Positions 4,481-55,200 of a stretch of 64,000 bases of DNA are shown piece after piece (positions within the stretch are counted from its first letter, which is position 1; each line of letters begins with the position of its first letter). The DNA is taken from contig NEEC01000014.1 in the NCBI GenBank assembly GCA_002189035.1, positions 868,001 to 932,000 on the forward strand, read 5' to 3'. The translations under genes and the position numbers were made by a program. Source of the stretch: Utricularia gibba (taxonomy: Eukaryota > Plantae > Magnoliophyta). Under the pieces are notes generated by a model that saw only the letters and a list, made by a program, of their open reading frames with translations, made no database searches and was not told the DNA's origin.

Positions 4481-6386
4481 ATGATGGTATGGGAATGCCT
4501 TTTACATCTAATGCTTTGCGGCTCTATTTTCTTGGTAATTGAGGGCTCAAGACTCCTTCCATCTCAACACAATGAGATATTCCAGGGTACGATTATTCTG
4601 TTCTTTTGAGCTCAGCGGGGTTAGAATCCAGATATAAATGAAGTTTTTGTTTCATGTGAAAATAGGGTGTTGTTTCAAACAAATTTGAAATTCGAGATCA
4701 TTTTTTGAAGTTCTAGGAAAATGGCGAGCTTAATTGTCAGGGTTTGTATCTTTATTGGATTTTGTCAATACAGTGGTCTATAAAAATTTCTTCTTCTTCT
4801 TCCTCTTGTGAAATGAAATCATGTGACTGGTTTTAGTTATTTTGGAAATGGTAGCCTGAGTCTGAAGCTGGTATTGCTGATTCATTTTCTCTCGTTTCGC
4901 ATCATTTTCTTCATTTGTGACCATGAACTTAAGAAGAAAAAATCCAGTATCTTATTATATTTCGAAGAGTTCTCTGTGTTTTGCTTGTTTAATTAGTATT
5001 CCTCTACAGAGGGACTTTTTCCTTTTGCATATTCATTGAAATCCTTTTGAGTTTGTACTGAAATGCTCTCACAAAATTATTTAGGTAGTGCTGGTGATGT
5101 CTTGAAAGATGATCCAGTGAGGAGGCTGAAGGTATTTGTGTATGATCTCCCTGGAAAATACAATAAAAAGATGGTACAAAATGATCCCAGATGCCTCAAG
5201 CATATGTTTGCAGCCGAGATTTATATGCACCGGTTCCTTCTTTCAAGCCGCGTTCGCACCCTCAACCCTGATGAAGCCAACTGGTTTTACACACCTGTAT
5301 ATACTACTTGTGATTTAACCCCAATGGGGCACCCAATGCCCTTCAACTCGCCACACCTGATGACAAGTGCTATACAACTAATTGCATCAAAGTGGCCATA
5401 CTGGAACAGAACAAATGGAGCTGATCACTTCTTCATTGTGCCCCATGATTTTGGTGCTTGCTTTCACTATCAGGTAACTTTTACCTTTTCAACATGGTTT
5501 ACACTGATGTTGATGATACTTTGTATTAGGGAGTCAAGTTTTCTGCTCTGTTTGAATTCAGGAAGACAGAGCAATACAAAGAGGGATTCTGAAGTTGCTG
5601 CAACAGGCTACATTAGTCCAAACATTCGGACAAAGAAACCATGTTTGCTTGAAAGATGGCTCAGTTATAATTCCTCCATATGTACCTCCCAAGAAAGTAC
5701 AAGCGCATCTGATTCCTCCCAACACTCCTCGATCAATCTTCGTTTACTTCAGAGGCTTGTTCTACGATCCTGGAAATGATCCAGAAGGTGGCCATTATGC
5801 AAGGTATTCCATTCTCACCTCCATCTCTGTGAACTGAGGATGGTCAAAATAAGTTGTCCTGAGTTTGTTTTTATTTACTCCCTACCAATATTTCAGGGGT
5901 GCTCGTGCAGCACTTTGGGAGAACTTCAAAGACAATCTCCTATTCGACATCTCAACAGATCACCCAAGGACATACTACGAGGACATCCAGAGATCTATTT
6001 TCTGCTTATGCCCACTGGGATGGGCTCCATGGAGCCCAAGGCTGGTTGAGTCAGTAGTATTTGGGTGCATACCTGTGATCATAGCCGACGATATCCTCTT
6101 GCCGTTCGCAGATGCGATACCGTGGGATGAAATCGGAGTTTTTGTCAGGGAGAAAGATGTTCCCAAGCTGGACGAAATCCTCACCTCCATACCCATTGAT
6201 GACATACTCAGGAAGCAAAAGCTACTAGCCGATCCTTCCACTAAACAAGCACTGCTCTTCCCTCAGCCTTCTCAGCCAAAGGATGCATTCCATCAGATTT
6301 TGAATGCGTTGGCGCGTAAGTTGCCACTGGGAGGCGACGAGATCCTCCCATGGACTCCTGAGAAGCCGGATCCGTCATCAGAGTAG
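4481..6386 (+). CDS. IRX10L: GT47 (exostosin family) xylan beta-1,4-xylosyltransferase, IRX10/IRX10L-like, 4 exons
   Basis: Exon 1 4481-4586 encodes a signal/anchor (MMVWECLLHLMLCGSIFLVIEGSRLL...), spliced to 5085 GSAGDVLKDDPVRRLKVFVYDLP; motifs HMFAAEIYMH, DHFFIVPHDFGACFHYQ, IFVYFRGLFYD, FCLCPLGWAPWSPRLVES; stop at 6386. Confidence 0.93.
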
Positions 6387-8590
6387 ACAATGAACCTTCG
6401 AAAACCCCAGCAACAAATCCCCAAAGGACCGCCAACGGCAGAGGATAAACCAGCAGCTGAAGGTTACAGATCCCCTGATATGGAATGATGGAAGTCTAGA
6501 AAGGAAGTTGCTTAAAGTTCTTCAGTCACGTTCTATATTTAGCTATTTCTTTAAAAAAAAGAAAAAAAAAAAGAAATAGATTAAGATTTTTTTTTTTTTA
6601 AAAAAAAGCCTTCCCAGACCGTCGTTGACTTTTCCTGTACGAGAGGGAAGACGTAAATGGGCGTGGCCCAATAAGATCAATTGCATCAGGCCTGTAGGTA
6701 GTGTCTATACAAGGTGCGTTAATGGGCTATAGGCCCAATTTCGAACCTATGTTTTAAAAACCACGATGAAACCGTAAATTGATCATCAAAATGATTAGAT
6801 TAAATTCGAATCGTTTTAAAATACGAAAAAAAATGAATCATGATATGATCATAATAAATCGTTCGTGACAAACAATTCATGTTTATTATTCTTTAATTCT
6901 CAATATGAATGTAATTTTGAGTGGAATTATGGACGAAGACGAGGTATGATGTGTAGTGTATGGTATGGAATGGAATGGGGTTAGGTGGAGCATTATGGTT
7001 GGGAGAAAGGGAGTGAAAACAACAGTTTGTGAAATAGAAATGGATACTGGCAAGTGAAGTCATGGCCAACAAATTTGAATTGAATGATCAGGAGACATGC
7101 CACCACACCCATCGCTTTCAGACAAGCACCCGCCCCGCCCCGACCCGACCCGACCCGACTTCAATTCCATTCCATTTCAACGAGTTATTACCAGCAGCAG
7201 CAGGAGCAGCAAGCAAGCAAGCATGAGCACATGGCGCGCAGCCCAGATATGGATTCCACGTATGCACCACCACCGCCTGCCTGCGTAGTACACATGGGAC
7301 ACGCAACGACCTCCCGCTGTCCAAATTTAAGTCCGATGGATGACGGCCTCCGACCGGGTCGCGAGCCGAGGCAGTTAGTTATAAGATATGCGGGGGCGCT
7401 GGAGAAACGGCCAAACTTGTATGATTGGATCTCGGAGCTGCCAAGACATGATGATAAGAACGCAGACACACACAGGGCCACCCCCACTACAGTCATCACC
7501 TCGCCCTCCTTTTTTTTTTTTTTCCTTTCTTTTGGAAAAACCCCCAAACAAGAGCTTCTTTTTGGGGGCCACCCCCCCAGCTGGGCCATTCAAGCGTAGT
7601 TCTCTGGATTGCGGATTTAGGGTTTATTTTTTATGGGAATCAGAGTGGGCAGGCAGGCAGCCTTTATTTGTCTGTGAGCGGACGGAGGAGAAACTGGATG
7701 ATTCAGTGGGGACTGAGGAGGCTTCTTCTGGGAATCTGCCCACTCCAGATGCTCTACCACTTTTTCCCTGTATTAACATTTCTTTCGTAAAAAAAACAAA
7801 AAAAAAGCATCCCTCTGCTTTTCTCGCTGTGTTACTGCAATTTGGTTCACAAAAACGAGCAAAAGATTGGGGGGAAAAAGGCTTGATTTGAGGTCATCTC
7901 TTCACATGCATGCTCCAGTTTGCCAGCTCTGCGTTTTTCCCCACTTGTCTCCTTCAACCAACTTTCAATGCTACATCAACACCCACACACCAAAGACTCG
8001 GTTCTTTTTTTGCCAGATTGGCCTCACCTTCAGCAAGAGACGGCGACGGCAAGGCCCCTTGAGCCTCACCTCCGCCGCTCCTACTCGTCGGCAACGATAC
8101 CCTCCTCCGTCTGCAATACTCGATCACTTCTTAAAATCAAAAATTCTTTTTTTTTAAAAGGAAATGTGGGAATTTAGAGACGAACTAGGGCACGAAAATC
8201 CAACGGCATCCAAACTGTCGGCTCGCGTCTGGGCGGTGATGAGATGACAAATCTGCATATTACAGCAGACGAATATTTTATCATTATTTGTGAATTAAAA
8301 AAAAGAAAGGAAAATAGTGGCACGTCACAGATAAGTAACTGCTAGTAGATGCACATTAAATTTCTACCCGGTTTAAAATAAAACTCCGATGGGAGACATA
8401 TGCCCCTCCCTGTGTGGCGACTCATCCAACATCGTCCTCAGTCACCCCTTCCGATCCACCACATCCGGCTCCCCTGGACCGGAGCGGGAACCAGACAGAC
8501 AGGGAGCCCTTTTCCAATCGCCATAATGATCCGCAGCAGAGGAAATGAATACCGGTGGTCGGCAAGGCTGCCCCGCCGGGGTTCCACCGG

Positions 8591-17725: not shown

Positions 17726-18216
17726 ATGGCTTCTTCTTCCGATTCCAACGGCAACCACCCGCTAAACGCACCCCACTTCTCCGTCGGGTTCGACCCCAGT
17801 TCGCTGCCGCACACCACGTTTGTCCAAGCCGACCCCTCAAACTTCCGGGCAGTCGTGCAACGCCTCACGGGTGCCGCAGTCGCGAAACCCGACACGGCAG
17901 CCCGGCGCACGGGCTTCAACCTCCACGAGAGACGCCCCACCGCCAAAAGGCTCGAGATCAAGCTCGGAGGAGCAGCCGCGGCCGCCGCCGGGGTGAGGGC
18001 CGTGTCCCCCGCCGCGGTGATGGCGTCTCCGGTGTCCCCGCTGGAGTGCGCGACGGCGCGTGGGAACAACCCGGGGACGCCGATGGATGAGGAGGAGCGG
18101 GCTATCGCCGGCAAGGGGTTCTATCTCCACCCGAGTACTTCCAGAGGCTCCGACCCCCGGAGCTACTCCCGTTGTTCCCGCTGCATTCTCCCAGAGAAAA
18201 TTCCAATTCATCCTAA
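17726..18216 (+). CDS. VQ motif-containing protein (intronless; apparent 1-bp frameshift near the C-terminus)
   Basis: TTFVQADPSNFRAVVQRLTG (FxxxVQxLTG), FNLHERR, EEERAIAGKGFYLHPS. The family-type tail PELLPLFPLHSPR is in the adjacent frame after the C-run at 18154-18158 and ends at TAA 18214-18216; uncorrected ORF ends at 18250. Confidence 0.92.
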
Positions 18217-19518
18217 CTGCAGCCCCATTCGACCTTTTTTTTTCGTTTAAAAAAAAAGCTTCTATTTATGCATCATAATAGAATAATAAATAGCCCATAA
18301 TCGTCAAATTCCAGTTCTTGGGCCGGTTCACTGCCGCCCTCTTGGGCTTTAGGCCCAATTGCATCCAAGTTCCATCCACGCGTCTCGTGGCAATTGGGCC
18401 ACCATTAATAGAACATCCTCATTTTTTAATGAATTTGGATTATTTTGAAATTCAAAGGCGCAGGATCCACGTGTCTCTTGGGTAGTGGGAGACAGATGGA
18501 ACTGCCGACCGCGTATTGGTTGTCGAAGATACAAAAGCAGCCTCCACTCTCACACGGAAGAATGTACTTTTGGTAATGAGCGTGGTGAAGTCCAAGGCGG
18601 CTGACGTGTTCGTGTAATAACAAGTCTACTGCCAGGAAAAAGTCAAGCCTCTAGGGTTCGCAACTGACCCATTAACTTTCTTTTATTTTTTTAATTATTA
18701 TTGCTTTACCGCTGTCGGCAACATTTTCTTTTTCTTTTTTCTCTTAGGGAGAATTTAAAATGGTAATAAAATGTATTATTGTTCTAAATGCGAAAATCAT
18801 TCTAATAAAATAAAATTTCAATTTTTAATTTTTTACTCTAAAAAGTAGAATATGGAATAGTCAAATTATTTTTGAAACGTTTTTACAAGAATAAAATTAG
18901 GGATATATAATGTTAGTGTAATGCAAGAAAGAAAGCCTCTTGTATGTTCCCATTATTTGTGATAATGTTAGAATTTTGGAAAAATTTCAAAAATTTGAAT
19001 TTGATCCAAAAGATTAAATTTTGGATAAATTTCAAAAAAAAATCAGGGAAATCTTGAAAGTGTTTTATTTCGAAAAATATCCAAAATCTGAAATTTTGTT
19101 TGTGAACATACTACATTGTGAATTGGGAGCTCTAAGATGTCATCATGATTCAATGTAGAGGAAAGTTGGGTGTTTAATATTGGTTTGTGATGGAGTTAGC
19201 AGGAGTATTATAGTATGGCACATCTCATGCCCCCACCTGCTTTTTATTCACTTTTTTGTAAGCATTACAAGCAAGGAACGTGAAGGGTAACCCTACCTTT
19301 CGCCTTACCCTCTGCTAAAGCTGTGTGTTTGGTTATGCTGAATTATGTAGAGTGGTCCTTCTCCACACCAGCCACGCCAAAAATATACATACATCCCTTC
19401 TTCCTTCTCCTCCTCCTTCTCCTTCTGCTTCTGCTTCTTCTTGTTATTATTATTATCATTATGGTTGCTGGTTACCCTCTGCAGCAGATTTTCATGGGAT
19501 CTCCATTTTTTGAATCAG

Positions 19519-38755: not shown

Positions 38756-41700
38756 ATGTCCAGGAAAACCTCGACTGCTTTCTGCGTCCGCCTGATCTTC
38801 CTCCGCCGTATGGGCGGTGGTCCTCGGACTTTTCCGGGTGGACTCAACAAGTGGCAATGGAAAAGGATGCATGAGAAAAAGGCACGGGAGAAGGAGAAAC
38901 GTCTACTTGAACAAGAAAAGCAGATATATGAGGCACGAGTTCGGTCGCAAATACGAGCAAAGCTCGCTCCTTCTGATAATCAGGTAGCGAGACCTGAAGC
39001 CGCCGGGGGGGTGCCGCCGAATTATGGCCCTTTAACGCCTGAAGAACATATCAAGGTGCTTGCCGATCGGTTCATAAAGGAAGGAGCGGAGGATTTGTGG
39101 AATGAGCGCGATGGTACTATAGAAATGCCGCTGAATAAGCCGGAGAAGAGTCGTGTTATTGGTCAGCCCATTGATTTGCAGAAATTGATAACGAAAGGAT
39201 CTTGCTCTAATGACGATGGAGCGAGTAGCCCTGGTGAGCACTCCAGATTTAGTAAAGGGGGCACTTCAAGGAGTTACTCAACGTACTGTGGGCTCAGATC
39301 GATATTTCAAGGAAATTTTGAGGATTTGCGGTCTGGCAGTGGATTTGGTATGTGGAGAAATTGTCAAGATGGGATTTTGTTGGGGTTCCAGCATGTGCTG
39401 AAGCTACAGCATTACTCCTCCATGGCTCCTCGGAGTACAGAAAATGGTTCGAATGCCAGAGCGAGACCTCGTGGTGGGAGAAGCATTGCGTGGCCAAAGT
39501 TTCATGGCAATGAAATGGACTCATCTGATGACGATGACGATGATAGTGATGATGAGGAAGATGTGCCAGGGAATGTTTTCGGTAATAGGGCTTCATTAGG
39601 AAAGTATGACATGAAGGCAAAGAAACGAGTGCCATTAAAATTCTTGGAAGCTGAAGATGACTTGTCCCAACATGTGGAGGCCATCAGGATGGAGGTTATA
39701 CAGAGAAAGGACGTGAAAGAAGATGATCTGCAGTCCTCTGAAGAGCAATACCGTCTTAGTACAAAAAGGTTTGTAGAACGCTTGTCTGGCTATGAATCCA
39801 TTTGATATTGTTCTGTATACCCTTAGTTTGAGTTGTCTTTCCAAAATGTTTCTTTGCAGGTTTGATGAGTGTAATGTATCGCTGTTGACAGTGCGTGCTC
39901 TTACAGAGGCTGGTTACATACAAATGACTAGGATACAGGAGGAAACTTTATTAGCATTTCTCGATGGTTAGTTTTTATGATCATCTAGTTCCCCTGGATT
40001 CACATTTCTATAGGTTTTGGATGTAACACTCAAACTATGATGATGGTTACAATCTTGTCTTAACTTTTTAGGCTCGTACATTTTTTTTTCCTTATGCTTC
40101 GACTTTCTTAAATTTTTCAAAGGGAAAGATGCTATGGTGAAAGCTGGGGCCGGAAGGGGCAAGAGCATTGCATTTTTGGTAAGGTGCAGTTGTGGAATAT
40201 GAATCTGATATTGTTGCACCATGTTACCCTTTGTTTACTATTCTGCTAAATGTATACAGCTTCCTGCTATTGAAACAGTTCTAAGGGCATCAACATCAAG
40301 AAATGGTGCTAGTAAACGGATCCCCCCAATATATGTCCTCATACTTTGCCCGACAAGGGAACTTGCGAGTCAAGTAACTGCAGAAGCAAATGTGCTCCTA
40401 AAGCACTATAATGGCATAGGATTGCAGACATTAGCAGGAGGGACACGCTTCAAAGTCGATCAAAGGAGGCTAGAATCAGAGCCTTGCCATATACTTGTTG
40501 GCACACCGTGTATCTTATTGGATCACATTGAGAACAAGTCTAGCATCTCATTGCACTTAATGCAACTGCAAATGCTTATTGTTGATGAAGCAGACCGCCT
40601 TCTAGATCTGGGATTCCGAAGAGACATTGAAAAAATTCTTGACTGTTTGCCTCAACAACGCCAGTCTTTGCTTTTTTCTGCAAGAATTCCAAGGGAGGTT
40701 AGAATTTTCATTCTTTTAGTCTCATCAAAGGCTCTGGTCAAATTTTCTCATTTGATGTATGATTTAAGATCTACGTAGATGCTTGATAGGATGTGTTTAG
40801 ATTGGCTTTTCCAGCAACTTATTATACCTTTCCCTCTCATAATTATATAAGCACCAATAAGCACTTCTGACCACATCCTGGTTTTCTTCTACTTTTATTC
40901 TTTTTCAGGTCCGTCGATTATGTCAACTTGTTCTAAAAAAGGATCATACCTGTATAGATATAGTGGGCCATGGACATTTGGATGGCAATGCATTGGTATA
41001 TACACTACGTTCTTACTTTAATTCATTTATATCTTTTTATTCATCCCGCTCAATCGTTCAGGTTAAGCAATCTTATCTTATTGCACCGCAAACGGAGCTC
41101 TTTGAAATGGTATACTACATAATAAAGAAACATATGTCAGAAGTTCTAGATTACAAGGTGAAACCTATATTCTTCTGGCATGCAAACTCTCCTTTCATGC
41201 GTTCTTATAATCTAAAGAATTTTATTGCTTGAATGACTTGTCAGGTTGTTATTTTCTGTGCAACTGCGATGATGGCCTCACTTTTGCATTCTCTTTTCCA
41301 TGGACTGCGATTAAATGTTAGAGAAATCCATTCAAACAAGCCTCCCCTGGTCCGTGCTCGGATTTCTGATGAATTCAAGGCCTCCAAACAGTTGATTCTG
41401 ATAACTTCAGATGTTTCAACGAGTGGAATGAACTATCCTGATGTTACGCAAGTCATTCAGGTACGAATATCACTTAGTGCCATACTCTTCCTTGGCGATC
41501 TTACATTGTTGACTCTAAACCACTCAATCTTGTTTTCTTAGATAGTGATCATTATTGTTAAACCTTACTTTTGGGACTGTTCTTGCTACCATCAGGTAGG
41601 AATCCCCTATGATAGAGGTCAGTATATTCGAAGACTTGGGAAAACAGGACGCGAAGGGAAAGAGAGTGAAGGGATTCTTTTACTTGCACCATGGGAAGAC

Positions 41701-42147
41701 TACTTTCTGAATGATCTGAAGGGACTTCATCTTGACAAGTTACCCTCCCCAAATCCAGATCCTGATCGAAAAGCAAAGGTCAGAACTTCATATCTTAAAA
41801 GTAGCATTCTTTCAATAAAAAAAAAAAAAGCAAAGACCAAAAACTGCTTGCTTCTTGTTTGGGATGCAATCTGTAGTTTCTAAGTTAGATTGCTGCTTTC
41901 ATTAATGCGAATGTAGGTAGATGAGTCCATGAACAGAGTGGATAGGAACCTCAAGGAAGCAGCTTATCACGCGTGGCTGGGGTACTACAACACGATCTAC
42001 ACCATCTCCAGAGACAAGACATTGTTGGTGGAGTCCGCCAACGAGTTCGCTACTTCAATCGGCTTGGAAAAGCCACCGGCTTTGTATCGGAAAACTGCCC
42101 TGAAAATGGGCTTGAAAGATACCCCCGGTATTCGAGTACGAAGTTAG
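38756..42147 (+). CDS. RH48: DEAD-box RNA helicase RH48-like protein with degenerate helicase motifs
   Basis: N-terminal MGGGPRTFPGGLNKWQWKRMHEKKAREKE, LILCPTRELASQ, IVDEADRLLDLGF, C-terminal EAAYHAWLGYYN..IGLEKPPALYRKTALKMGL; all introns traced are in frame. Confidence 0.92.
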
Positions 42148-43069
42148 GCAGCCCTCTGGTCTGTTCAGTGGAACAGGTACGAGTTTTGTATTTCTTTCAT
42201 TAGTTGCAACCACACAAATGGTTGCATTTCTGTACATAAACCATGAACAGAGACCTGCGCTTCACCAAAAGTCTCTGATGGCTTCTTGTAACTTTTTAAA
42301 AGTTAGAATTTGATCTCGTCTGAGAAATGGTGGTTAGTGTTTCCATTAAAGATGGAGACCCCTGGCCCCAAGAAGGCTCCTCACTTTCCACGGCACGTTT
42401 AAAGTATGCCCGAGTCCCTGTTGGTGAAGGCGTGCAAGCTTTGATTCAAGCAGCATGCTGATGCTGACGCCTCGAGCTCTTGTCTTCTTCCATCAGTGCA
42501 GGCTACTGTTCTCTTTGTCCTTCATCAGATGAGCTCTAGATGGGGAACAAACCCCTTCAAACGACAGTGCCCCGCAACACACTTAATCTGCCTTTTCTGA
42601 AGCATTAGCAGGCAATCAAGCAGTCATATCACCCTAACTAACTGGCCAAGGTTCAACGCTAGCAGACACTGAAGTGCTTCAGAATCACACAGTTACATGT
42701 AGCTAACTAAGCTAGCAGACGAAGATTCTGAAGACCAGTCATTTAAAAATTGTTCTTCTTCATGGGTCGATCGGGATTGGAAAAGAGACCCCTTTTTGTG
42801 GATCCCGGTCGGAAAGGGATAGGATCTGAGTTGGGGTGGACGACGCTACTTCATTCTGACAGCAAACGAGGAGAACTGGAACTGGGAGTGGGCAATCCCG
42901 TAATTTGAGCAGGTGCTGCTGCTCCTGCATAAAGTGGGACTCTGTCTGTGCTGTGCGTCATCATTATTTCCAATTCCCCAAAACCCCACTCGCCATTTAC
43001 TTCTCTTCCTCGACGCCTCTCCCCAGCAACCCGAGTCCTTACCTACAACATTACATGCTTTTGTCGAGT

Positions 43070-43314
43070 ATGAAAGTATACCGACGACTCCTCCTCCTCC
43101 CCACTGTATTCCTCCTCCTCCTGCTGCTCTTCCTCTCCATTTCCCTCTCGAATCGCCTCGTCCCGAAGACGCGTTCCGGCCTGATCCGGTTCCCCTCCCC
43201 CCAGACTCCTCTCCCTCTCCGGCGAGACCCAGAGCCCCCGCCGCCGCTCCGGAGTTCAGATTCAGAGTCTCCCACAGAAGAACTCCCGCCGGCCCCAATC
43301 CACTCCATAACTGA
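43070..43314 (+). CDS. CLE: CLE (CLAVATA3/ESR-related) peptide precursor split by a 1-bp frameshift
   Basis: ATG at 43070 opens the signal peptide MKVYRRLLLLPTVFLLLLLLFLSISLS; the adjacent frame ends VSH-RRTPAGPNPLHN-TGA (43312-43314), a 12-aa CLE box. 245 nt plus one base gives 82 codons. Confidence 0.85.
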
Positions 43315-44427: not shown

Positions 44428-47400
44428 TCATGGCCGGAAACCGGGGACCTGGTCCGCGGATGTGTTGAGCGCCTGAAAGAGGGTTCGATCGAGGAGGGTT
44501 CGATAGGGATCTTCTGTCCTCTTCCTCAGCAAGAACGCCATGTTCGCCTCCACCTGGGATTTTACATTCAGGTACAGCTCTCGCGCCTTCTCCTTGTCGT
44601 TCACTCCGTCCAGGAGTCCTCTTGTGTCGATTGCCTTACCGAAGTAGTAGTAGAGGCGGCCGGGAATCTTGGGGAGGAGAAGAGGGACGTGGACGCGCTG
44701 ATTCGCCACCTCTCCGCTCATTCCAGCCCTAGGAGGAGGACGCAATTTCATCGCATTCTTTTGCTTGCCGGCGACGGGTTAAGAGGGAAATGAGGTACCT
44801 ACCTGATGTTGGATACGGTTCCGTCGTTCAACTTCCTGATTTCGTCGCTCAGAATTGGGATTTTCATCAGGTCGTCGTAGTCCAGTGCCATCTGTGAACG
44901 ATGAAAAGGTGAGAACTTGGGGCTGGCCTCATGGCAAATTTGTGTAGTTTCGAGGATTTTGAAGGTCTTTCAGTGTTTGAAAACACTGAAAACTGTGTAG
45001 GAGAGGCTACCTCTGCTATGTCATCTTCTCCGACGGCTCCAAAGGGTACAATCTTGGCTCCAAATCTTGCGGCCATACGGACGAACTCCGGCTGTTCCGG
45101 CCAGAACAGCTTATACTCTTCACCCTGACAAAGAAGAGTGGGTGCTTCTGGGCATGCCATCGCTTTTGTTAAGATCAGATAAGGGAATGGAGACGGCAAC
45201 TCGTACCTTTCTGTGGCATGCCTCACGAGCACCGCCGGGGTAGAGCAGGACGTGCGATCCCGCTTCGAGCAGTTTGAAAAGATTGGTTGGAGTCGCCGGC
45301 ACGCCGCCGAAGAGTCTGATGTTGTCCAAAAATGTGACACTTGACATCACTGAAGACTCTTGGTTTCCATCGTCAAGACCAGTGAAGAGGGAAGGATGAG
45401 CCATGCCACGAACCATGATCTTCTTCTGCTTCAGAAATTCTGCGAGCAGTGGAATGATTTCTAGGCCGAGAAGCATGTGGTAACCTACGAGCAAAACCGG
45501 CCCCTCCGTCGGAACACCTTCCAGCCCTCTCACTATGCTTCCATCTTCAGTAGTAGAATACATCACTGGAGATGTGATGCGTTGAAACCATTGATATCTG
45601 GATTCAGGATACACATCCCAGACATTGTTACAGACACAACCGAAAAAACTGTCACATGCTTTGCTCTATGCAAGAATTCAAAAGTACCAGCATTTGCCTT
45701 CAAAATGACAGAGATTGGCAGGTCTTATCCAAATGGAAGCACAAGATGCAAGCAAGGAAATTCTGGAAGTTCAAGGACACAGAACGGCAAGGAAATTTAC
45801 CCGATTCTGTCCTGCTTAAATTCAGACAGACTGGGAGGTATGAAATCATGGACATAATCTCGTTTCCTTGAACGGCGGTAGAAGGAAGTGCTTTTGATGA
45901 CACTCAATAGATTAACACCATCCTCCTGCGTCATCCAAAGCCGGCTCTAAATCGAAAATGAGGTACAAGCTGACTACTCCGAAATAACAGAGTCACATCT
46001 TACCAATAGAATGGCATGGCCATTGTCTTTGAAATACCGTACATTGCAATTCTTTAATGACCTGAGAAGCCTCCAAGCTTCTTCACCACTGGGAAGCATC
46101 CTATCCTTGCCACTGCAGCAACAGAAAATATTTCCATGGAAGATGAAGAATTGTTTTTTTTTCTTTTTTCAGGAAGAGAAGTCATACTTTCCTAAGGAAG
46201 AGCAAGCAAGCAAATGAAATGGACCACAGACAGGAAATGTTGAATGATCTTTAACTCTAGTAGAAAATGGGACTAGATGAAAGATAGATATGCAGCAACC
46301 TTGCAAGAACAAGGACTTCTGCAGTAATGGATCGAAGACGAGAATTAGCATATGCTGAACCAGTTTTGAGCAGCTTCAGTTTCCAATCAAGGTTTTCTTT
46401 GGGTATGAGATCAGCCATGATCTGCCACATTCATGAGAAATTAGCAAGTGAGAATAATGTATACATACACTTTTCAGTTTTCGTAGATTTTCTTTTTATT
46501 GCATTGTGTCCGTGAATGTTTTCAACTTAAACATCAGAACGCCGAGCAGGACTGATATGTCCCTGAAATGGGAAAAAAAAAAGAAAATGAAAGAATTTGC
46601 TTACAGAAAGCCTAGGAACTAGGGATGCAAGATTTGTGGCAAACTCTTCAAAATAGCTTGTAGGCATTACCGATTCGATACCTACTGCAGCCATTTTTAT
46701 GGGATCGCCTGGTTTTGTAGGAGAGTAGCAGTGTTTATAAGATAAGTTGAAGTTAACAAGCTATAACCATTGTATTCATCACACTGTATGCGTACCCATA
46801 ACCAAGGACAGCAAATAAGGAACAGATACATGTAGCTCCTCAGGAATGGACACCAACAGAGGGAGCAGGGGCTGCAGCTCTGACCTGCCAAATGAAGTTG
46901 CTGAAAGAATAAATGACAAGTCAAATTCCAACTCCACGAATTTGGGCATAGCATGAAACTCCAAAGATAACTTGAATACTGTATGGAATTATACTGTTTT
47001 TGAAGGACCTGGATTAGATAATATCACTACAAGGTCAATATCAGGATTTCTCGCTGCTACTGCTAGAGCCAGGCATCCACCAAAAGAATCTCCGACAAGA
47101 TAGATCGGCTTATTTGGGGATAATTTGTGCTGAGCAAGCACAGTTTCTTCAACTAAGCTCACCAAACCTGCAGAAAGAATCCACTTCTCCATAAAAGCTA
47201 GAGCATCACTACAAAACTGTTGGAACTTTCACCAGTATTTCACAAAAATTCAGTTATAACAATAATGAGCAGCATAAAGCCCAAACCTGAAAATGAGGTT
47301 CGGTCTTTCAGCGGGATATGCAAGCACCAAACATCAAAGACCCTAAAACAAGGACCAAGCTTCTGAAACACGAAAAAATGCCAAATTTGATTCAAGTAGC

Positions 47401-47993
47401 AAGGCTAGCTTCATCTCATTAGAACTTACTTTCCCATAGACTTATGATGCAAAATAAGACCTAGTCCAACACCATCAAGACCTGCAAAAGGTATCAAAGT
47501 ATACGAAAATGTACTTAAACATCATGAAATGAACCAAAGTAAAAAAAAAAAAAAAAAAAACATATGAGCAGTAGAAAAGTGCAACAAGTACCCGCCATGA
47601 AGAGCAGAACAGGGAATCCTTCAAATGAGGGCCGCAAGCGATTGGTGTGAACCATCGAGGCGGCCCATTGTCATGTTTAATCAAATCGGCCGCATAATCA
47701 AAAAAATCCCTCACAGTAGTGTCACCATAGCCATCATCCCACAAAGGTTCCAACTTTTCCACTTTCTTGGTCCTCCTTTCAACTTTGACACTTACATGCT
47801 CTTCCCCAGACTTTTCTGTCGCATCCTTTGTAAGAGAAGAAACTCCACGGGTTGCTTCATTTACTCTCAAATGATCATCTGAAGCTGTGTCCCTGACAGA
47901 ACACTTTATTGAAATCCTAGACTGAGCCCTTTTCTCTGATTTCAAAACCATACAAGGAGGCCATAGCGTGTTGGGAGTTAGACCTGAAGCCAT
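44428..47993 (-). CDS. PES1: Phytyl ester synthase / esterase-lipase-thioesterase acyltransferase (PES1-like), plastid-targeted
   Basis: Transit-peptide-like N-terminus; LEPLWDDGYG..GPPRWFTP; hydrolase motif VGDSFGGCLALAVAARNP; acyltransferase domain GPVLLVGYHMLLGLE, LLYPGGAREA, LFWPEQPEFVRMAARFGAKIVPFG, PGRLYYYFGK. 1-bp frameshift at the end of exon 1. Confidence 0.92.
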
Positions 47994-49282: not shown

Positions 49283-52231
49283 CTACTGGCATCTGCGCCA
49301 ATGGCTGCTGATGGGCATTCCTAACCTGTCCAAAAGACCAGACCCAGGATAGTCTCTGTTATCAAATGTCTCCAATCCTGTCTGCATCATCGGCCCAGAA
49401 TCACCGTAAACATTATACCTCTTCGTGGAAGAGTATGATCTCTCCAGCGGTTGATACCTCAGCTTAGGGACACTGAGAGACCTCACTTTGGCCTTTGATG
49501 ATTCTGTGTAAGCCATATAGTTTGGATGCACCAGATAACCACTCTGGTAGCAGCTGCTGGTTCCATCGCTCCTTGTTGGGGTGTACATTCCCTTCCTGGA
49601 GCTCTTACCCCTCGACGAATAGAACGTGGGACTGAGAGTATCTTCATCATAGTCATCGGCGTAATGAGCGTACTCGAAATGGCCAAGAGATTGAACTTCA
49701 ACAGATGATGGACTCATCATGGTGTCTTTGGACATTGAGAAGCTCTTGCATTTTCTGTCTCTGCGCGTGCTGTTGTAGTAAGATGGATAGTTGAATCTCC
49801 TACTCTTGAGCATCGTTTTCGGAATTCCACTGTCCACTTCTAGAATCTTGATGTTTCTTTCATCATCTCTTAGAATGCGTGCTCTCTCTGCATCGTAGTA
49901 CTCACTTTCTGTTAAGAACGAGCCAGTTTTCTGCATTGCAGGCAAAAGGGGTGAATCACAGTGACAAAGAAGGATCAAGTATTCGCGACAGAGGAGAAGA
50001 CAAAATGAAACCTTGACACACAATGGCTCTCCATATTTCATACTCCTTGCTCTGTAGTCGTATTTCTCAGGAGTTACAGGCCCCTGCCAACACAATTGCA
50101 CAAGGCAGTCAAATTAAGCTCCATCCCTCATTGGATTAGTCATGGAGAGTAATACAATACAACATAATACACGGAAAAATATGTTTTTCAGTCGTACCAA
50201 ATGTCTGAGATATGAAGAATTCTTAATACCCAACTCAGAGCTGAAGGCTCTACAGTCACAGGCTTTTGCTTGCACTCTTACAAGTGTCTGCAGCCGCTGC
50301 AGAAACTGCGCAGTCTGTTTTCTCACAAGGTAGCCTCTAACCAGTGCTTGAATCTTCACTAGCCCTTTAAGTGCACGTAGTGCTCTCCTCGACTACAGAC
50401 ACAGTTTAAAAAAATCAACTTTTGTGTTTGTACAAGGAAAACAGTACGAGACACAACTTTAATACACTGTCAAAGAGAACAAGCTCAAAAACAAACATCA
50501 TTAAGAAGCAGCATTAATGACTCGATGAATCAGACAGACGATCCCTGCAACCAATGAAGAGTTGGAGGTTTTGTGATTAGACTCCCAAGGAAAGGGCTGC
50601 CCCCTCATAAAATCTAACTGCTTATCAATTATTAGCAAAGCGCAGAGGACAGAATCTGGTTTTATGAAGAGTTTCAATTTTTTTTTCAAATGAAAGCAGG
50701 CGTTCGATGAAAAGTGAGGAGTTTTGAAGTTTGTGATTTTCTACTCAAGTAAAAAGTGGGAGTGTGCAGGAAAGAGAGAGACATGCTATCCAGCTTTGTG
50801 TTCCTATGGAGCAGAAAAAAGCACCTCAGAGTAAAAAAAAATAAAACTTACCAGTTCATCTACCGACTTTCACGGTAAAGAAATGTGAAGTCAAGAAAAC
50901 AGTGGAGTGAAAATGATAATTACAGCGGTGTGAAAAAAACTTGGCTGTCAAAGGTGAAACACATCTACCCAAGAGTCCAAGTCCCATATATAAAGCAAAT
51001 ACACAAGGGATCACAGAGTTGGCAGGTCTCACTAGAAGAATCCCAAGTTTTTTCACAAGTTTCATAAGTGGATCACAAAACATCTCTTTCAAATGCCTCT
51101 ACAAAGTCAACAAGCTCAACTTTTACTTCACATCTAGCAGTACATGTGAAAATTACAGCTGAAACTTTACCTACAGTTTTTGTATCCTGTGGTTGTACAT
51201 ACAAATGAGCTCCAAAACAGCACTCCCATTCCCCTCATGGTACATCAAAGCAAATGATCCGTATTCACCCCACCAAAAAAAAAAACTTGATTTTGACCGT
51301 ACAGAGCTTTTTACCCCACCCACTAAAATTTACGATTATTCGTTTTGACTGCTTAAAAGCTACACTAACCCACCGGACCCTTATTAAAATGCAAGTCGGC
51401 ATCTCATTAACGCACAGTATCTTTTTAGCTCAACTTTTTTTTACCCAAACAGCAGTAAAACCCACCAACCGTTGCTTTTCTTTTACCTCATCCACCGTGA
51501 TTTTTTCACTCAGATTAAACAAAAAGAAGAAAAAATCTTTCCTTTAGTTAATATTCCCCTGATCTTCCTCAGCATTCCTAGTAAGACATCTAAACATACC
51601 AGATCCCATAAAATATTTGCAAATATGCGTTTTAAATTAATATTAATTTCCAATTGATGGCAGAAAAAAAGAAATACAGTTTCCTGCAAAGAATCTCTGA
51701 AAACCCATTTCACACACAATCCAGAGCCTCAACTCCCATCACGCAGTCCAGAGAAATCACATGGAAATACTGGAAAGTCGAAGGGAGTCGTTAAAGTTTT
51801 ATTTTTTTCAACTGACACGAATTTCTGTCAGCATCAAACAATGTGCAAAGAAAGAGAGAAAAATGAAAAATGATACTGGAAACTAACCAAGTAACCGCGA
51901 AATTGCGACTGAATCATAACCGCCGCTGCCCATTCCTTCCGCATAGCGACGGAGGGGGAGGAGGTAATAGCATTCGTATTACTATTACTATTCGCATCAA
52001 CCTTCCCAGGGGCCGTGAGTTTCACCACTGCCGCAGCCGCGTGGCGGCGGCGACTGCGGCTTCCGCCGCTGCGGCGGTTGCAGCAGCGACGGCGATGGCT
52101 CGTCTTCTGGCTTCTTCTTCTTCCTCTTCTTCTTCAAATCCCGATTTCGAGTGGCCTTTCTCCTTTCGGCTGCATTTCTTTTTCGTTTTGATGCCGAAAA
52201 GGCCTTTCAGCCATCTCGCAGCTACACCCAT
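49283..52231 (-). CDS. IQD: IQ67-domain (IQD) calmodulin-binding protein, IQD22/23/24-like, with DUF4005
   Basis: [31 protein letters not shown] motifs [66 protein letters not shown]. 1-bp frameshift at about 52043. Confidence 0.92.
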
Positions 52232-55200
52232 TTCGGTGAAATCGGAGCAACGCCCCCACGGTCTGCTCTGTGCAGGCACAGTGATGGGAAACACGTTAAC
52301 ACGGGAAGACGATTTATAGAACCTGTATTTTGTATTTATTCCTTAAAAAAAACAAAATAATGTTCAAACTAAATAAATAATCATATTTTACTTATTCCGC
52401 GTAATGACGTCATTTCACCCAAAAAACAATTATCATTTACAAAAATAGACACGCATCTATTATTTATCATACATTAAGTCAAAAAATTTTAATTGAGAAT
52501 ACCAATTTTTTTTTCACACATTTCACCAACTATTGTCAAATTTATAATCTACACCAAAAAAACACCCCTAGTTTGTAAATTTCCCTATGGCATAAACTAG
52601 TCACTAATATCTTGAATACCTGCAATAATCAAACAAGCCCCAAAATCATCCCTTTTACCAAATTTAATCCAATAATAATAAACTTGACAACATTTACCAA
52701 CTTAATATATCAAAAGTAATTTCGAATTCAAATACGAAATCCCAAATTTTTTCGAATATTGGTTTGGGGATGAGGATTGATTTGGTTTGTTATGCTCATC
52801 AAATTGATGTATTCAATTCCAGAGCTTAATCAAATGCCATTATTGAGAGAGTGATTTCATGTGGTTATTCAATGGTATTCATTCCCATGTTCATCTGCAA
52901 TCTGCATTCACCACCACACCATTTGATTAATGCAAATTGGGCCAACCCAAATCCCCAACTACACTCCCAATTGTCAATATGCTCTGTTTAATTTTGCTTC
53001 CAAAGGTATTAATAATAAAATATAACTCAAATTTATAGATATATTTTAAAAATAGTCTTTTTTTCAAACCCAAGTCAATCATAACTGTTTTTAAAGTAGA
53101 TATTAAATATTAAAATATTTAAAAGTATTCGCTTTGATGAGAATAAGATAAAAATTAATTTACCTGAATCAAATAAATTAAAAAAACACTTGTTATCTCG
53201 AATTTATTTAACCTCATAGAATAATATACGTTGTATAAATCCAATCAAACACTACCTTATAGATTTATATCAATATTTTTTTCTTCATATTGTATACATT
53301 TTTAATTGTAAATTTTTTAAATTAAAATATTTAGAAAACGGTGTACGGCTTTTATTATTCTTTCTCATATAAAAAGAATGAACATACATTTGTTTATGAA
53401 TGGATAAGATAATAATATAATAATTGAAAAATATATTTTTTTAATTACCTTATTTTAAAAGACACATAAATTAATATCAAATTAAAATTATTAACATCTT
53501 GTTTCCCACAAGATTAAAAAAATATATAAATTTTGTTCTCGTTTTTTTTTCAATTATTTTGATGGATGGGCATTTATTATTGAAGCACGCGCTTTAAAAA
53601 ACATACCTATTTTCTCAGCCTTTCATGTAACACGCCGCAGCATCCGCGGTTTCTAGTTATTATTAATTCCATTTTTCTAATTATTTATTTATTTATCGCC
53701 CTGTGTTGTCATACGTAAGTCACAACCTTTATTTGGGCAACATGGTCACAATAATTCCCTAATTATTTATTTACATTTAGGGCGAAAGCAATATCCTGAA
53801 TAAAAAATTATTCAATTTCAGAATTCTAAATTAAAAATGTCTTAATCAAAATAACCATTCTATTTTAATTTATTTAAGAAATAATTATTTATTACATATT
53901 GTATATTAAAATTTTCTAATTAGGTTTATATATATATATAAGAATATTATATTTTATCCCAACAAAAGTAACTAAACTCTTCTAATGATTGATTGGATAA
54001 AAAGAATTATTTAAGTATACTAAATATATTATTTAGTATTCTATTAGGTTACGTTTTTTAAAAAATAATGAATTTTTATAAATTTTAATTTTTTAAATAG
54101 AATTCGTTCATATTTGATCATATTTACTTTTTTATTAATGAAAACTAGTCAAAATCTAATTTGACCTATGTGTGCGTGATAAAAAGTTACTGATGGGTTA
54201 TTTTTCCACCAAATCCACCAAACCAGACCTCATTTGCTTGCATTCATTATCAGGAGGGGGTTAAACAGAGTTTTACTGTGCGTAAAAAATATGTGAAGGG
54301 CGTGGACGGAGATTCTGCGGGGGGGATTGATTGATTGGGTTGGATTGGATTCAGTCTGTGGCGGCTGACCCGGTGATTTTCTGCTGGTACTTTGTTTTTT
54401 TACTGTGGATAATTTACCCAGATTCTGTGGCGATCGAGACCCGTGTGTCTTTGTTTCATGTACCCGCATCTCCCCCTTGGGTTAACCTGCTTTCACTTTG
54501 CCAGGCGGGGGATGGGATGGGGACCTGAATTTATGTCACCAACTAATCCATTAAAAAAATGGATTAATTTAAAATAATTTATCTATAGTTTATATTCTTA
54601 AAATAATAATAATAATAGAGGTTTTTTTGTCGTCTTCTTGTGTTCGTTACTGGGGTGGGGCCCGGACGGGAGGAGATTGCGGGCCCGAAAGGAGGGCCCA
54701 TGGGCGACCCGAAAAGCCCAGACCAAAAACCGACAATATTGTAATGTACATTTTTTTAGAATTCTAGAAGAAAGAGCATCGGGCTCGGGCTCGGGTACGG
54801 ACGGGTCGGATGGATGATGATGATTTCTGAAGTAGAAATGCAGCTCACGCCGAGCTGGATCTAATCAATGCTTGTGGCGCTGTCTGAATGAGCTGGATGG
54901 CGATCTGTTGTGGTTTGTCGTTTAGTGGACGCGGACACGTGTCCAGTCTCAACGGCTAGTGGCCACCGGGGTTAAAAGTCTTACCTAGTTATTTAGTAGT
55001 AACCACCCCCATAATCCCAGATTAATCATTTCATTAAAATATTCATATTTCAGAAGATGCACAGAAGCAAGTCAAGTACATATTCTCCCCTGGAAAAGCT
55101 CACTCTTCCCTGTTTCTTCTTCTTCTTCTTCTTCTTTCCCACTCAACTCCACATGGCGACTGTGTATGCCTCTGGGTTGGTTTAAGTATTTGGAATTTGG

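Follow-up and report, generated by a model that had tools for sequence, protein, structure and literature searches.

The CLE peptide hormones are characterized by the CLE box, a stretch of 12–13 residues at or near the C-terminus of the precursor with R1, P4, G6, P7, N/D8, P9, H11 and N/H12 as its typical positions. After processing, the peptides carry hydroxyproline or arabinose and act through receptors. Within this family, Arabidopsis CLE14 is known to arrest the root meristem during phosphate starvation. Two reports describe CLE14 as a peptide whose action in the root meristem runs via CLV2/CRN and PEPR2 and which, in addition, restrains leaf senescence (PMC2940047, PMC10904329). CLE14 corresponds to the locus At1g63245 (PMC2940047), and the helicase RH48 to At1g63250 (PMC11122041).

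The locus described here lies on the plus strand of a 64-kb stretch of plant DNA (the window) and resembles the CLE genes in every part except for the continuity of its reading frame. Judged from its sequence and its genomic position, it is a genuine plant CLE peptide-hormone gene that has escaped annotation. This identity, already proposed in an earlier note on the same DNA, is now supported by uninterrupted orthologues, which two other lineages carry at the syntenic site.

Architecture of the CLE locus

The following features of the window are relevant for the locus:

38756–42147, plus strand: RH48-like DEAD-box helicase gene, used as synteny anchor, with 922 nt between its 3' end and the CLE start codon further downstream
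43070–43201, plus strand: frame A piece with start codon, signal peptide (about residues 1–27) and first part of the variable spacer, assigned by translation, hydropathy and alignment to the N-terminal third of orthologous precursors
43192–43202, plus strand: C4 and C6 runs, likeliest site of the missing base and of the switch from frame A to frame B, assigned by break-point scan and DNA alignment
43204–43275, plus strand: frame B piece, Pro/Ser-rich spacer preceding the CLE box, with the conserved R-V-S-H flank, assigned by break-point scan and alignments to orthologues
43276–43311, plus strand: coding sequence of the CLE dodecapeptide RRTPAGPNPLHN, assigned by translation and by match to the CLE peptides listed in PMC4776436 and PMC5538625
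43312–43314, plus strand: TGA stop codon that immediately follows the CLE box, a feature shared with the orthologues, assigned by translation

The frame opened by ATG 43070 (frame A) starts with M-K-V-Y-R-R, continues into a Leu-rich core and then reads S-L-S-N-R-L. Within residues 7–20 the Kyte-Doolittle mean over nine residues reaches up to 3.6, and by hydropathy the basic n-region, a hydrophobic core about 15 residues long and the small-residue S-L-S site together have the outline expected for the signal peptide of a CLE precursor. A second in-frame ATG, situated five codons further 5' at 43055, has a weaker start context. Beyond the signal peptide, frame A remains open as far as 43459 and carries no CLE motif along this length. 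Frame B, which is shifted by one base relative to frame A, has its open stretch from 42913 onwards, lacks an ATG throughout and offers GTG as its only start. It ends at 43276–43314 with the C-terminal CLE box RRTPAGPNPLHN followed by TGA. Translation and hydropathy confirm in this respect the description given in the earlier note, namely a signal peptide that runs into non-CLE sequence and an adjacent frame that contains the CLE box but no start codon.

In the assembly, the two halves do not form the one small ORF (less than about 150 residues) that combines signal peptide and CLE box, being offset by one base. The span from ATG to TGA comprises 245 nt, which is one base less than 81 codons plus stop, and addition of a single base would give the 81-residue precursor that had been postulated. 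No Pfam profile matches the pieces of the window or the orthologous ORFs. When the 64-kb window is translated in six frames, the CLE motif is encountered a single time, and none of 300 block shuffles contained it, even when searched as a loose 7-mer. Chance proximity of a signal-peptide-like ORF and a CLE-like 12-mer, without any gene, is therefore practically out of the question: beyond the broken frame nothing speaks for it, and it is refuted by the syntenic orthologues, which share the R-V-S-H-R flank, the CLE box and the stop with the window.

Intact orthologues next to the RH48-like gene

Neither half of the precursor gave a match in word-index protein searches, because the CLE ORFs are not gene-called. 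Orthologues were sought by synteny instead, by collecting contigs with an RH48-like helicase gene and inspecting the region 3' of this gene. Three contigs from three samples of one Logan group (L003, L007 and L008) extend from exon 1 of the helicase gene through its last exon and contain, about 1.85 kb further and on the same strand, a continuous 88-residue ORF with signal peptide, spacer and the ending RVSHRTTPGGPNPLHN followed by stop. This ORF is identical across the three independent read assemblies (L003:8037-8303, L007:8027-8293, L008:7085-7351). In Escallonia herrerae (L020:20535-20783), a continuous ORF of 82 residues with the ending VSNRKVPSGPNPLHN and a stop follows 1.9 kb after the helicase gene, again on the same strand. 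The lack of any orthologue with a contiguous ORF for signal peptide and CLE box had been named beforehand, together with the lack of a transcript, as the outcome that would refute a functional CLE gene; such ORFs are present in all four contigs. At all five places (the window, L003, L007, L008 and L020) the CLE ORF is without a gene call, which bears out the expectation that ORF-based annotation would miss the gene.

The search also covered contigs without a CLE gene. Within 10 kb of the RH48-like gene no CLE was found in Capsicum, Helianthus, Dioscorea and Musa, the IQD22-like loci of Erythranthe and Salvia have other neighbours and revealed no CLE, and the contigs of a second Logan group (L015–L019) break off about 900 bp past the end of the helicase gene. 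A look-up with the last helicase exon gave no contig extending beyond the CLE gene. The L003 contig (8259–8352) and the ends of L007 and L008 run into a simple repeat of the GAA/TTC type, and the contigs stop about 50 bp past the CLE stop codon. Due to these contig ends, the downstream neighbour of the CLE gene is not visible in L003, L007 and L008.

The CLE ORFs of the L003 group and of Escallonia resemble the window locus in position and strand relative to the RH48-like gene, in overall architecture and in the flank preceding the box; in the alignment, the pieces of frame A and frame B tile along the orthologous precursors. The last 20 residues of frame B are 75% identical to L003, and the R-V-S-H-R flank, the CLE box and the stop are common to the window and its syntenic orthologues. 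In contrast to the window, the orthologous ORFs are continuous and, with 88 and 82 residues, have longer spacers, whose motifs C-R-D-I-R-R and K-S-R-N are only faintly recognisable in the window. The remainder of the window precursor is strongly diverged from the L003 orthologue, whereas the invariant CLE positions and the position of the stop codon have been retained. This pattern indicates that the window gene was under purifying selection until now or very recently.

Relationship to CLE14

By position, the window gene is the orthologue of the CLE genes located downstream of the RH48-like helicase gene in related plants, and it is probably of the CLE14 type. A CLE gene beside an RH48 helicase gene is found in the window, in the L003 group and in Escallonia. 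The same neighbourhood probably exists in Arabidopsis too, where physical adjacency is suggested by the neighbouring locus codes of RH48 and CLE14 given in the papers. It is the combination of this synteny with the Arabidopsis locus codes that makes a CLE14-type orthologue probable, and the RH48-to-CLE neighbourhood appears to be conserved between Lentibulariaceae and Escallonia and, going by the locus codes, in Arabidopsis as well.

Arabidopsis CLE14, with the peptide RLVPKGPNPLHN, shares with the window locus a precursor of about 80 residues that has a signal peptide and carries the CLE box at its C-terminus, and 9 of the 12 residues of the peptide are identical. The differences are confined to positions 2, 3 and 5, where R-T-A of the window peptide is replaced by L-V-K in CLE14. 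Moreover, the box of CLE14 is followed by one further residue, whereas the stop follows the box directly in the window. Since the window peptide is equally identical (9/12) to CLE9/10, CLE8 and CLE21 (list in PMC5538625), the similarity of the peptides does not by itself distinguish CLE14 from the others. A closer match is PtCLE10 of Populus trichocarpa (Potri.002G226300; KRRVPAGPNPLHN, 74 residues), which is identical at 11 of 12 positions and has a precursor of similar size (PMC4776436); its dodecapeptide RRVPAGPNPLHN carries Val at position 3, where the window peptide has Thr. Thr at position 3 is also present in the L003 peptide RTTPGGPNPLHN. With these two peptides at hand, the R-R-T-P-A half, which the earlier note had regarded as less usual, turns out to be not very unusual.

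Position of the frame break

Three C runs come into consideration as site of the frame break, C4 at 43192–43195, C6 at 43197–43202 and C5 at 43235–43239. For the break-point scan, the window was read through with an X at the break, which was placed at every codon position, and the resulting translations were aligned to two orthologues. The score forms a plateau between about 43145 and 43217, peaks at 43199–43213 and drops from 43220 onwards. In the DNA alignment, positions 43214–43233 of the window, read in frame B, pair with the codons that specify the conserved P-x-K-S-R-N stretch in Escallonia and L003. As frame B is already homologous to the orthologues from about 43216, the break is expected before that point. 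Within the spacer, this alignment of three CLE loci is not reliable, and it does not locate the missing base to a single nucleotide. The break most likely lies upstream of about 43216, with the C4 and C6 runs at 43192–43202 as best candidates, and the C5 run at 43235–43239 is disfavoured. Thus, the previous proposal of a missing C between about 43193 and 43240 holds with regard to the C runs, but is better narrowed to 43190–43216 and loses the C5 run.

A correct sequence with a gene that functions by other means, be it a frame-restoring short intron, initiation in frame B at a codon other than AUG or ribosomal frameshifting, is very improbable. Altogether 12 GT..AG combinations of length 3n+2 would link the signal peptide to the CLE box; however, all of these candidates are 32–179 nt long and contain only 26–34% A+T, which is unlike plant introns, and the orthologues are single-exon ORFs. 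On account of size and composition of the candidates, rescue by an intron was rejected. A non-AUG start in frame B would leave the product without signal peptide, since none is encoded in frame B upstream of the break. To our knowledge, no rescue by intron, non-AUG start or frameshifting has been described for CLE genes.

Similar lesions in other genes of the window

Besides the helicase and CLE genes, the window contains:

5063–6386: GT47 exostosin gene
17726–18250: VQ-motif (VQ4-like) gene
44428–47993, minus strand: acyltransferase-like gene
49283–52342, minus strand: IQD22-like gene
from 59079: SPX-MFS transporter gene

Two of these genes are interrupted in the same way as the CLE gene. ATG 17726 of the VQ4-like gene opens the frame that contains the VQ motif, whereas the conserved C-terminal P-P-E-L-L-P-L-F-P-L-H-S-P-R, whose counterpart in Arabidopsis VQ4 is the peptide LLPLFPVTSPR (PMC3567860), is encoded in the -1 frame, as after loss of one base. 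The break falls into 18138–18160, a segment that includes a C5 run, and looks like an assembly error of the same type as the CLE break. In exon 1 of the IQD22-like gene, the frame switches at about 52040–52050 within a conserved Ala-rich helix encoded by GCC repeats. Here, too, the shift is the one expected if a single base were lost from a G/C repeat, and this lesion sits in a very short run. In total, single-base deletions were found in 3 of about 8 window genes examined (CLE, VQ4-like and IQD22-like).

No frameshift was detected in the RH48-like, GT47 and SPX-MFS genes of the window; this counts against an artefact, as artefacts are evidently not everywhere. An apparent frameshift of the acyltransferase-like gene at 45120–45340 was discarded, the overlap being an ordinary GT-AG intron. 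A reference-free count of open frames in the vicinity of G/C runs gave too much noise to be of use. At 7084–7891, two overlapping ORFs of about 170 residues are found in different frames, with many G/C runs of 5–7 bases and without Pfam match; this segment may represent another homopolymer-broken gene or merely a GC-rich stretch with several open frames.

Lineage of the window

In a representative search, exon 1 of the helicase gene (window 38810–39802) has its best match in Genlisea aurea. In the tree calculated for this exon, the window is sister to Genlisea aurea (support 87/83), the Logan group (SRR30296716 and others) forms the next branch, and the clade is supported by 100/99. The IQD exon matches Lamiales proteins at about 50% identity. 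The helicase tree, which represents one gene, suggests that the window genome belongs to Lentibulariaceae, on the Utricularia/Genlisea side. This lineage is without true roots.

The exon structure of the RH48-like gene (38756–42147) is intact, and compared to the Helianthus and Logan orthologues substitutions are observed in core motifs of the protein, with G-R-G-K-S for G-T-G-K-S, S-A-R for S-A-T and R-R-L-G-K-T-G-R for H/N-R-L-G-R-T-G-R.

Assembly undercall or null allele

The split frame is likely a one-base undercall of the assembly in the C runs at 43192–43202, with the CLE gene of the living plant being uninterrupted. Apart from the offset, the locus has no defect: start codon, signal peptide, invariant CLE residues and stop position are all kept. 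This, in combination with the same type of lesion in the VQ4-like and IQD22-like genes, favours an undercall over a null allele. The choice between functional gene and natural null allele, as formulated in the earlier note, still comprises both possibilities, and the evidence favours the former, a gene that functions although its sequence looks one base too short.

Unlikely, but with some biological appeal, is a real frameshift, by which a CLE14-type gene would have been recently inactivated, or would segregate as null allele, through slippage in the C runs in a rootless carnivorous lineage that does not need the peptide. Homopolymer slippage is the commonest natural indel, and the helicase tree places the window with Genlisea aurea in a Lentibulariaceae-like clade. 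CLE14 is described as active in roots, where it triggers differentiation of the meristem (PMC2940047; references in PMC10904329), so that the loss of the gene in a rootless lineage would be plausible. Against a real frameshift stands the single lesion in a locus of a very fast-evolving lineage that has otherwise preserved start, signal peptide, invariant residues and stop position, as well as the fact that two unrelated conserved genes of the same 64 kb display the same type of single-base deletion. Moreover, CLE14 also acts in leaf senescence, and rootlessness would therefore not make it dispensable. Lower still has to be rated the specific scenario that the break is real and that a rootless carnivore of the bladderwort family silenced its CLE14-type peptide very recently. 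If true, this would provide a datable case of the loss of a signalling peptide after the loss of an organ.

Predicted hormone and implications

Provided that the preferred explanation, an undercall in the C runs, is correct, the living plant would produce one uninterrupted precursor of about 81 residues, composed of signal peptide, a short spacer rich in Pro and Ser and, ending at the stop codon, the CLE box of 12 residues. By analogy to studied CLE genes, the precursor would enter the secretory pathway and be cut to a peptide of 12–13 residues. The mature peptide would then be expected to be hydroxylated on prolines and to signal via LRR receptor kinases of the CLV1/BAM/CLV2-CRN type.

For genome annotation, the locus illustrates that short CLE genes go uncalled and that a likely homopolymer error hides the window copy even further. 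As a by-product, the interrupted genes of the window add to the evidence for homopolymer errors in this assembly. If the frameshift were real, the loss of a root-active peptide would be tied to the loss of roots; the evidence points the other way. For the family, the synteny between helicase and CLE gene offers a simple route to the same CLE gene in other asterids.
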